A DNA stretch of 56,230 bases, the filler included, from Bipalium vagum (Eukaryota), in assembly GCA_037834085.1 (NCBI GenBank). It is 3 parts of 3 records of this genome, joined end to end, with 100 filler letters (N's around TTAATTAATTAA, not from the genome) between each part and the next. Parts side by side here need not be neighbours in the genome. Positions count along the whole stretch, not along the records: positions 34,576 to 56,230 come from JBBMKC010234053.1; 2 more parts are not named here. One strand, written 5' to 3'. Shown here one piece after another: positions 47,601-50,600 of the stretch. A program made the translations under genes and the position numbers. A model generated the notes under the pieces. It saw only the letters and a program-made list of their open reading frames with translations, was not told the DNA's origin and made no database searches. How positions within the stretch are numbered: position 1 is the first letter of the stretch; each line of letters starts with the position of its first letter.

Positions 47601-50600
47601 ATATCAGCGGTTTTTCTCTGTTGTTTGCTTTAATTAATTTATAAGGCACCTACCTTCCTGAACTTTTCCGTGTTATTCAACCGGTTTAAAATCGCTTTTC
47701 GCATTACTCTCAGTGATGTAGCTAATTGTTCTTGTGATTGAGCATCGTCTTCGTCCAATAACCTTTGCAGTTCAACGTTTTCAAATTTTTGGTAGTTTTC
47801 CAGCTCTTTATCAGTCACATCGAAATCAGCAGTTTTCAATTCTTTAAACCACTATCGACAGAGTCTTTCTTATAAATATGGTTGGCATAAGACTAAAATC
47901 TTATTATGTGCATTGGCAACCGTTTTCTTCAAATTAAACATAAAACCAAAACTTCCACAAATGGCATTTTCGAAACTGAAATATCTTGATATAAAATGCA
48001 AAATTGAAAATGAAGCATAATTATTTTTCAAAATTGCAAGATAAATAGCGCCTAAACTGTACTACAGATAGCAATAATTTTATTTTAAAATATTTCTTTG
48101 TTAAAGAATGACAAACATAATTTAAAAAACGGTAGTCATACTGTACACCTAATAATAATAATAATTTCAATGTTTGATTATATATTTTAAAAATATATTT
48201 ATAGGAAATACTGGAGACTGTTCAGCCTACATTATAGAAAAATAATGGATAATTATTTTAATATTTCCGTGTCAACCAAAGTGAAGCCGCATAATAAATC
48301 ATCTAAAGTTTTCATTATTAAAGATTGATAAATTATGTTGTCTTATCAATCGTAATTCAAATTTGTTTTGTGGGTTTTAAATAAGATTAATAATAGATAA
48401 GTTAGAATGTTTAAAAATTTACTACAATTTTAGAGGCAATCAATTTAGAGTTCAAAACGATTTTTCTGTATTAGAGACCGATCTGTGGTCAAAGAAATTT
48501 TCATCAAGATATGCACTTACACTTTGAAGTACCGATCCAAGGCTAGTAAATCAATACATTGTTGAGCTCAACAACTTACTGTTTCAATAATCTTAAAAGT
48601 AGATATCAAGTAATATCATTTCAAGAAAAAATCGAAGAAAAAATATGAGTTTCTTAGCATTAGTAACATTTTTAGGTGTGAAAAATTTATGAGAATTAAA
48701 TGTAATTGAAAAATTACAAATAATAATCAATAGGAATCAAATTATTTGTTTCTCAATATATTGATGCACAAAATTGAATTCAAATGAATACTGCAAGGTT
48801 TAAGGCTTTTTTATGATGATCAAAAATCTTAATAATTTCGACATTTAAATGAAAATATTATTCAAAATCATTGAAAAATGATTTATTTTGACAGTTTCAA
48901 AACATTTAATGATTTAAAATAAATGAATTATCACTATTGATAAAAAAATATTTCCAATCAATAAACTTTAATGAATTCATTTTTCAATATAAACAATCAT
49001 ATAATTATGTTTAATTTGATTATTGATAAAAACAATTTTTCGTTCTATGACAAAATTCAATATTTTTATCACTGAAAGTTTTGAATTTGTGACAATGATA
49101 ATAATCATACTAATGATATATACATATATATACAAAAAGAAAATAAAAATTAATAAAATAATCAATTTATTATTATTATTATAAGAAAAAATAATAAATC
49201 CTTTAAGGCACAGACACCTGTTTACATGCTTTTAACAAAAAATTCTAAGTAGGGCGACACGAATCGATGAATGAGTTAAATATTTCTGATAATGTGATGA
49301 ATTTCGAACGCTGTGTAGTTTAATTTTTAAGGTTGTTTTAAAAAATAACCCATTGCTATTCATAAGTATCAAATAAAGTGAGATCAAAATGCTTCCAATA
49401 TTTAAACTTTAATAAGAGACAAGTTGATAGTTTTCATCAATCTTACACATTGCACTAAATATTTAATATCAAAATCTGCTTGATCCTGTTTTTAGAAGAA
49501 TATTTTGATAATTTTTAATTCGGATAAATAAAATTTTAAAGCTTTTTTTATCAAGAAATCATTAAAAAATTGTCGGACTATCTAGAACTATTTTTTTCAA
49601 TTTCAATATGATTTTTATATTTTTCAATATTATCAATGGGTTGATGAAATGAAGTTCTAAAAGTATTTTTGAATACATTTGTGCCTAATTACTGAAATTA
49701 AAATTAGAAAAATATTGAAAAACAATGAAAACCAGATAAATGAATGAATAATTTTAACGAACCATATACAATCAATAAAAATATTTATAATACAAATCTA
49801 TGAAAAGTAATCAATTAATCATAATGACTATAATTAATAGATCTTTTCATTACAAGACGACCAGACCTAACTCAGCTCCTACTAACCATTGAATGATCGA
49901 CTTGATGCAGGAAATAACTGAAAGGGGAGCATGTCCATGAAACTGCATTCTCCATCGCTGTGAGACACTGAACACGCATGATAGATCCAATATCTAGAGA
50001 AACCATTCGTTCAAAACATTTTTCATAAAAAAGCCGAGATGTCCAAATGCTAAGAAACACATACATGCAACAGTCAAACATTTATAGCACTTGGACACCA
50101 GCAGGTCTGGTCGCTACACCCCATCAAAGAAAAAGAGCAAGCAATCGGCAAAAAGTATTATCTATACATCGAAACACAAATTGGAACATGCTTACCATTG
50201 ACCTGTCTATTTCTTGAACGAAATAGTTTATCGAATTATTGGTCCATGAGACTCGACCTGTCAGACAAGTCCTCGTAGTGACTCTCATAATCGAGCAAAT
50301 ATCTGCAAGGCACAAATGATCAACACACCCTCCTTCAACATCCACCCTTTAGGAATCGATTGATTCCCCCACAGAATCATTAACACACAAACATATCAGT
50401 CAATAACTATCAAAGTTTCTTTTTTATTTCCTTTGAAGGAGAACAATCACATCATTAACACAAGTTTAAAGCATAAAGAGCGAAAACAATAGTTCATTAC
50501 ATTCTAAATCGATTCAAAGAATCAATAATAAGCTTGAATTCCAAAAAGTAATCTATTTTCACAAAGATTTATTGGGAAACACTTCACATATTTAAACCAA

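Follow-up and report, generated by a model that had tools for sequence, protein, structure and literature searches.

The locus described here raises the question of whether one gene for a histone H3 lysine 79 (H3K79) methyltransferase can encode two different enzymes. The window, a stretch of 56,230 nucleotides from the Bipalium vagum assembly GCA_037834085.1, carries on its minus strand a multi-exon gene of the DOT1L type. Between constant exons 6 and 8 of this gene lie two homologous exons, named 7a and 7b in the order of transcription. It is likely, at a probability of about 0.7, that they form a functional pair of mutually exclusive exons. An earlier reading made without database searches (the sequence-only reading) had proposed such a pair.

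Two tandem copies of exon 7

The match to the Pfam family PF08123 and the presence of key motifs place the candidate gene in the DOT1/DOT1L family, and H3K79 methyltransferase activity is predicted. With a Pfam cut-off of 23 bits, the exon pieces reach 59.2, 67.8 and 23.9 bits, and exon 6 is 71-78% identical to animal DOT1L proteins. The glycine motif that binds S-adenosylmethionine (SAM), DLGSG/VGQVV, is split across exons 4/5. The acidic-patch arginine is found in exon 6 (FRITDRNL), and the invariant tryptophan of the substrate loop is present in both 7a and 7b as VSWT, aligned to human positions 303-306.

Exon 6 finishes in phase 1 at position 52229 with ...RNLD and one carried-over base. 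Both copies of exon 7 are open across 35 codons when read in this phase. They are adjacent and homologous, have equal length (107 nucleotides), identical splice phase and intact AG/GT sites, and are separated by an intron of 202 nucleotides, as the sequence-only reading had described. Its count of 17 shared residues out of 36 is also reproduced, as 16 identical residues among the 35 full codons and one shared split Asp codon. The search with tblastn of either exon-7 peptide against the piece of DNA under study recovered the other copy at E 1e-7; no third copy was found there with the two peptides. Both copies match positions 175-205 of the DOT1 profile, and both give a gap-free alignment to residues 287-320 of human DOT1L in solved structures (E 8e-6 for 7b, E 3e-3 for 7a). 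This alignment, which is the sole basis of the residue map onto the human structure, yields the same numbering of I290, W305 and Y312 as proposed earlier.

One could suppose that the tandem pair is an assembly artefact, e.g. two alleles or paralogous loci collapsed side by side, all the more so as the sole read set available is probably the source of the assembly. However, the copies are 51% identical in nucleotides, which is far past allelic divergence, and each flanking intron is unique. Both copies are spanned by a Logan contig of 2885 nucleotides that was assembled independently; it has zero differences from the window across 49200-51200, although its reads probably come from the same sample as the assembly. 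Thus the tandem layout is not an artefact of scaffolding. Moreover, the same architecture is found in chromosome-level assemblies of bivalves. An artefact is therefore highly improbable.

The reading frame accommodates exactly one copy. When neither is used, the join of exon 6 to exon 8 (G to CT-TGA) reads GCT TGA, an instant stop. When both are used, 7b is open in the shifted frame, and a stop follows some 90-150 nucleotides further on, in the exon next to the 36-nucleotide exon 8, or in the 48-nucleotide intron between them if this intron is retained. Since 107 is not a multiple of three, the full frame survives, and the full enzyme is encoded, only in transcripts with either 7a or 7b. Both dead ends had been foreseen in the sequence-only reading, and they are seen at the junctions. 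The intron between the copies is long enough for removal by splicing. The exclusivity of 7a and 7b is not steric: it would come from the reading frame, that is, from decay of the wrong products, and is perhaps also helped by RNA structure.

Age, selection and relatives

The nucleotide identity of 7a and 7b is 55/107. By codon position it is 17/35, 24/35 and 12/35 at the first, second and third positions, respectively, with a local random expectation of 0.30. Thus the third positions are fully randomised and the second positions are the best preserved. Eight of the 16 conserved residues are encoded by different codons (e.g. Arg by AGA and CGT), and the Nei-Gojobori estimates are 0.58 for nonsynonymous divergence (dN) and past saturation for synonymous divergence (dS). 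In 20,000 trials of a neutral simulation, one copy was decayed with the local base composition until its nucleotide identity to the other matched the real value. The decayed copies shared 7.1 +/- 1.8 residues with the other copy and never more than 14, compared to the 16 observed (46% protein identity; P<5e-5, 0/20,000), and were free of stops in 9.8% of the trials. The codon-position pattern and the simulation show that both copies were held as protein-coding for most of the time since an old duplication. They demonstrate purifying selection at the protein level on both of them, as the sequence-only reading had claimed from their deep divergence.

The frame of 7a is open and retains the family-invariant I290, VSWT, Y312 and D318. 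Ancestral residues are divided between the copies: the IDRS end and Gly301 are kept by 7a, and Gly288, Pro309 and His315 by 7b. Such complementary retention has the look of subdivided duplicates rather than of a decaying copy.

Across all exons, even the N- and C-terminal ones with their poor conservation, the closest counterpart of the window's proteins is trematode DOT1L, and the organism is probably a flatworm. Exon 7b has 60% identity to the single exon 7 of Paragonimus. In the exon tree, which has 35 columns only, 7b groups with Macrostomum, Paragonimus and Opisthorchis (support 88/99), and a clade of 7a and 7b has p-AU (the P value of the approximately unbiased test) of 0.26. One exon 7 each was found at four loci, those of Paragonimus (L001), a cestode (L005), the gastropod Bulinus (L007) and a rotifer (L002, an assembly that we take to be Brachionus plicatilis). 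Exon 7b has the canonical, flatworm-like form of the W305-loop segment, and 7a is the more divergent of the two. The pair is most simply explained by a duplication in this lineage, after which 7a changed faster; an older origin of the pair with later losses is possible.

Several hits (P0143, P0083, P0144) are closer to 7a than to 7b. They provide no evidence for a 7a lineage, as they are intron-less metagenome fragments and a rotifer gene with only one exon 7. The rotifer-like segment L002:6609-6713 and the micro-eukaryote metagenome fragments L003 and L004 have a single exon-7 segment with several of the unusual residues of 7a, namely a basic residue preceding VSWT, Asn preceding Tyr312 and Gln at the position of His315. 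Judging from these proteins, the unusual substitutions of 7a appear compatible with a working enzyme. The top hit P0001, with two matched stretches, is unrelated to the exon duplication: this protein of 757 amino acids has one complete DOT1 catalytic domain at residues ~1-320 and another, in tandem, at ~420-740, and stems either from a fusion of gene models or from duplication of the whole domain in some animal.

A parallel pair in bivalves, and possible RNA pairing around the exons

Exon 7 occurs twice in two bivalve loci as well, at 42253-42359 and 42820-42926 in Sinanodonta woodiana (L006) and, with the same order of types, at 15186-15292 and 15739-15845 in Pecten maximus (L008). All these copies have 107 nucleotides and AG/GT sites. 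Their third codon positions are saturated (12-13/35 identical), and the second positions are identical in 34-35/35 cases. Exactly one variant is present in 24 of the 25 deposited isoforms from Sinanodonta, Pecten, Dreissena and Mytilus, all of which come from gene-model annotation (Table 1); the remaining one is a partial Dreissena record of 338 amino acids with no match to the segment. The sequence-only reading had been aware of no such switch in DOT1L, but four bivalve genera are already annotated with isoforms that differ by exactly exon 7. In the literature, full-text searches retrieved no description of alternative splicing of exon 7 in DOT1L or grappa, the bivalve pair included. Thus the exon-7 switch is already in the public annotation of bivalves, and the present gene adds another case of tandem-duplicated alternative exons.

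The two pairs are alike in many respects. In both, the exon corresponds to human 286-321 and is arranged as 107 + 107 nucleotides in tandem with the same phases, with one copy per isoform as annotated in bivalves and predicted here; the third codon positions are saturated, and the differences cluster around the W305 loop (human 300 and 307-311) and at 314 and 317. The bivalve copies differ consistently at human positions 289, 300, 309-310, 314 and 321, which overlap the area that differs in 7a and 7b. On the other hand, protein identity of the bivalve copies is 74%, compared to 46% here, and the ancestral-like bivalve copy comes first, whereas here the canonical copy, 7b, is the second. There is a partial parallel between the pairs, Leu314/Val317 versus Val314/Ile317, with the genomic order reversed. 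The 35-column tree resolves nothing on the orthology of 7a and 7b to the bivalve copies, placing only 7b, with flatworms. As the gastropod, the trematode and the cestode carry one copy, the duplications in the flatworm lineage and in bivalves probably arose independently; the tree does not formally reject a common origin.

Two pairs of complementary boxes of 11 nucleotides, A1:A2 and B1:B2, were found in the 820-nucleotide region around 7a and 7b (Table 1). The duplex energies are -15.6 kcal/mol for A1:A2 and -19.9 kcal/mol for B1:B2. Among dinucleotide shuffles of the region, 0/500 reach -19.9 kcal/mol and 0/500 have a second-best pair as strong as A1:A2. The minimum free energy fold includes both pairs (z = -4.35 compared to 20 shuffles), with A1:A2 as the outermost stem. 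By analogy with the selector/docking pairs of other exon clusters, pairing of B1 with B2 would loop out 7b and favor 7a. Pairing of A1 with A2 in the modeled fold would enclose both copies and cover the acceptor region of 7a. The boxes may guide exon choice. This is similar to the docking/selector system of the Dscam type in that intronic complementary elements occur beside variable exons beyond chance; however, there the selectors compete for a single docking site, whereas here the pairs are nested. The bivalve loci have one marginal complementary pair each (P about 0.02) at non-corresponding places, and a pairing mechanism conserved between these two loci was dropped from consideration for that reason.

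Two other structures were noted in the same region. In the predicted fold, exon 7a and the intron downstream of it form a long local hairpin that hides the 3' end of 7a and its donor (50130-50222, minus strand). Through a 14-nucleotide repeat, I5, positions 50222-50209 of exon 7a pair with 50019-50006 in the branch/acceptor region of 7b.

Several observations weigh against a functional pair. On its own, 7a scores 17.5 bits over the same profile positions where 7b scores 23.9, and thus falls below the Pfam gathering threshold of 23. It lacks G288, P298, P309 and H315, which are near-invariant elsewhere, and forms a long unplaced branch in the tree (length 0.96). With these lost residues, long branch and low Pfam score, 7a could have come under relaxed constraint recently. 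No candidate 7a-like open frame was found in a search of 5.8 billion proteins, and a search for close relatives by exon 6 yielded a best foreign match of 77%, after the Logan open frame of the organism itself (100%). Two flatworms at a greater distance, Paragonimus and the cestode, have a single exon 7. Only one public sequencing run contains the locus; it is a DNA run, and no RNA run of this organism was found. Finally, A1:A2 and B1:B2 consist of four separate boxes, are nested and do not compete, so that pairing alone provides no either/or choice.

It could be that only 7b is used, and that 7a is silent or a decaying relic after long service, or is included at a negligible rate. This would be consistent with the canonical character of 7b, which groups with flatworms and has 60% identity to the trematode exon, with the long branch, substituted near-invariant positions and weaker Pfam score of 7a, and with the lack of 7a-like sequences in the databases searched. 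However, an open frame of 7a has a chance of about 10% under neutral decay, and 7a retains both splice sites, the exact length and all residues critical for catalysis (I290, VSWT, Y312 and D318). It has diverged mostly at third codon positions, and the loss of function would need to be very recent. We consider this explanation unlikely.

Another possibility is that the second copy is mainly a regulatory "poison" cassette that tunes DOT1L dosage, as inclusion of both copies or neither leads to a premature stop. Indeed, in both non-productive outcomes many exon junctions follow the early stop, the 202-nucleotide intron is spliceable and so permits double inclusion, and A1:A2 pairing would loop out both copies. 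But such a role needs no conservation of the peptide, whereas constraint at the protein level is seen in 7a, and the bivalve variants are both annotated inside full-length coding isoforms. This makes a mainly regulatory role rather improbable.

Our preferred reading is thus a functional pair of which one copy is used at a time. Dscam, 14-3-3 zeta and myosin heavy chain are examples of genes with mutually exclusive exons. Such exons are born by tandem exon duplication (Kondrashov and Koonin 2001, as cited in PMC1949830). Exons 7a and 7b resemble them, being adjacent and homologous, of equal length and phase, with a frame that needs one copy and with complementary boxes in introns. They differ in that there are just two variants and that their base-pairings are nested, and their mutually exclusive use in this animal is predicted from the sequence.

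Table 1. Exons and complementary boxes of the DOT1L-type gene (window coordinates) and bivalve isoforms relevant to exon 7
Feature	Coordinates or accessions	Strand	Comment
Constant exon 6	52229..52433	-	AG acceptor and GT donor in sequence; Pfam DOT1 positions 107-173, 67.8 bits
Exon 7a, upstream copy	50196..50302	-	107 nucleotides; entry phase 1, exit phase 0; AG before, GT after
Exon 7b, downstream copy	49887..49993	-	107 nucleotides; phases as in 7a; AG before, GT after
Constant exon 8	46687..46722	-	36 nucleotides; encodes LEEYF..., counterpart of the human ILENYF motif
Next exon after exon 8	starts 46638	-	beyond the 48-nucleotide in-frame intron
Box A1	50308..50318	-	pyrimidine tract 5 nucleotides upstream of the 7a acceptor AG; perfect complement of A2
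Box A2	49676..49686	-	200 nucleotides downstream of 7b; perfect complement of A1
Box B1	50103..50113	-	intron between 7a and 7b; perfect complement of B2
Box B2	49858..49868	-	18 nucleotides downstream of the 7b donor; perfect complement of B1
Sinanodonta woodiana isoforms	KAL3870081, KAL3870082 vs KAL3870080		differ by the exon-7 cassette
Pecten maximus isoforms	X1, X3, X4 vs X2; XP_033737589 vs XP_033737590		differ by the exon-7 cassette
Dreissena polymorpha isoforms	X1 vs X2, X3; XP_052258144 vs XP_052258145		differ by the exon-7 cassette
Mytilus isoforms	three species, 15 isoforms		one exon-7 copy per isoform containing the segment

The donor of exon 8 at 46686 is a candidate site, placed by means of the sequence and its homology to the human ILENYF motif. 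The intron that follows (46639-46686, minus strand) has a length of 48 nucleotides, a multiple of three, and no in-frame stop; its retention would add 16 hydrophobic residues and would not break the protein. There seems to be a further very short intron (~44 nucleotides) near 46530-46573. The remaining open frames of the piece are transposase remnants: introns and flanks of the gene contain broken transposase open reading frames of the mariner/Tc1-like type, at 36578-37194 (minus strand), 40852-41376 (plus), 47210-47839 (minus) and 55375-55665 (plus). One of these remnants has a weak match to Pfam Transposase_1 (E 0.006), and one resides in the 3.2-kb intron between 7b and exon 8.

Two predicted forms of the enzyme

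The proposed course of events is as follows. A single 107-nucleotide exon of the DOT1L catalytic domain underwent an old tandem duplication, after which both copies were retained as coding sequence. Transcripts with no copy or with both would reach an early stop and be removed by nonsense-mediated decay or yield a truncated product. The gene would then be expected to make two enzymes, one with 7a and one with 7b, alike in the core that binds SAM, in the arginine for the acidic patch and in all residues that contact ubiquitin, and differing in the flanks of the invariant Trp305 and in the following strand. We infer that both copies are spliced, that the choice between them is regulated, perhaps by the two intronic pairings, and that the enzymes differ in activity.

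In human numbering, I287, I290, M291, R292, V293, V303-T306 including W305, Y312, F313, D318 and M321 are identical in 7a and 7b. Positions 288, 294-302, 307-311, 314-317 and 319, about 19 residues, differ. The counterparts of R282 and L284 are in constant exon 6, and those of L322 and F326 are in constant exon 8. Of the identical residues, Y312 reportedly belongs to the channel of the target lysine, according to the first DOT1L structure paper. L284, I290 and L322 of DOT1L cradle ubiquitin L73, F326 is a key ubiquitin contact, and R282 is the anchor on the nucleosome acidic patch; the W305 loop takes on order only in the active complex, where W305 shuts the hydrophobic lysine tunnel (Worden et al., bioRxiv 10.1101/501098). 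As I290 is identical in 7a and 7b and the other contact residues are in constant exons, the two forms should not differ at the ubiquitin and acidic-patch contacts. Thus the suggestion of the sequence-only reading that the forms engage the nucleosome differently should not hold at the ubiquitin contacts, but may apply to the flanks of the W305 loop, which do differ. The likeliest effect of swapping 7a and 7b would be on the ease of loop closure over H3K79, and hence on the rate or the product state. That the two forms differ in the output of mono-, di- and trimethylated H3K79 is a speculation.

Trypanosomes have two paralogous H3K79 methyltransferases, DOT1A and DOT1B, with different product states. 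The situation predicted here is similar in that one organism would have more than one variant of the enzyme. However, DOT1A and DOT1B are encoded by separate genes and differ along the whole protein, whereas here one gene would swap a cassette of 36 residues.

To our knowledge, DOT1L is the only H3K79 methyltransferase in animals. It is a leukaemia drug target, and the control of the rate and product state of its nucleosomal methylation is still under study. A tentative generalization, which we hold to be possible rather than probable, is that the 36-residue Trp305-loop cassette became and stayed an either/or exon through two or more independent duplications, one in the stem of the bivalves and another in this flatworm-like lineage. 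In that case, a single H3K79 methyltransferase gene could supply an animal with two enzymes that differ in nucleosome-dependent loop closure. A different rate, processivity or methylation state would be possible, chosen through regulated splicing in which intronic pairing serves as a partial guide. Gene models at this locus should hold two isoforms, and a model with both copies or with neither would be wrong. The either/or cassette would also be a natural experiment on the W305 loop, as only the loop flanks change and the contacts with ubiquitin, the acidic patch and SAM are untouched. The presence of two copies of exon 7 in bivalves as well suggests that this segment may be a preferred place for evolution to tune DOT1L.

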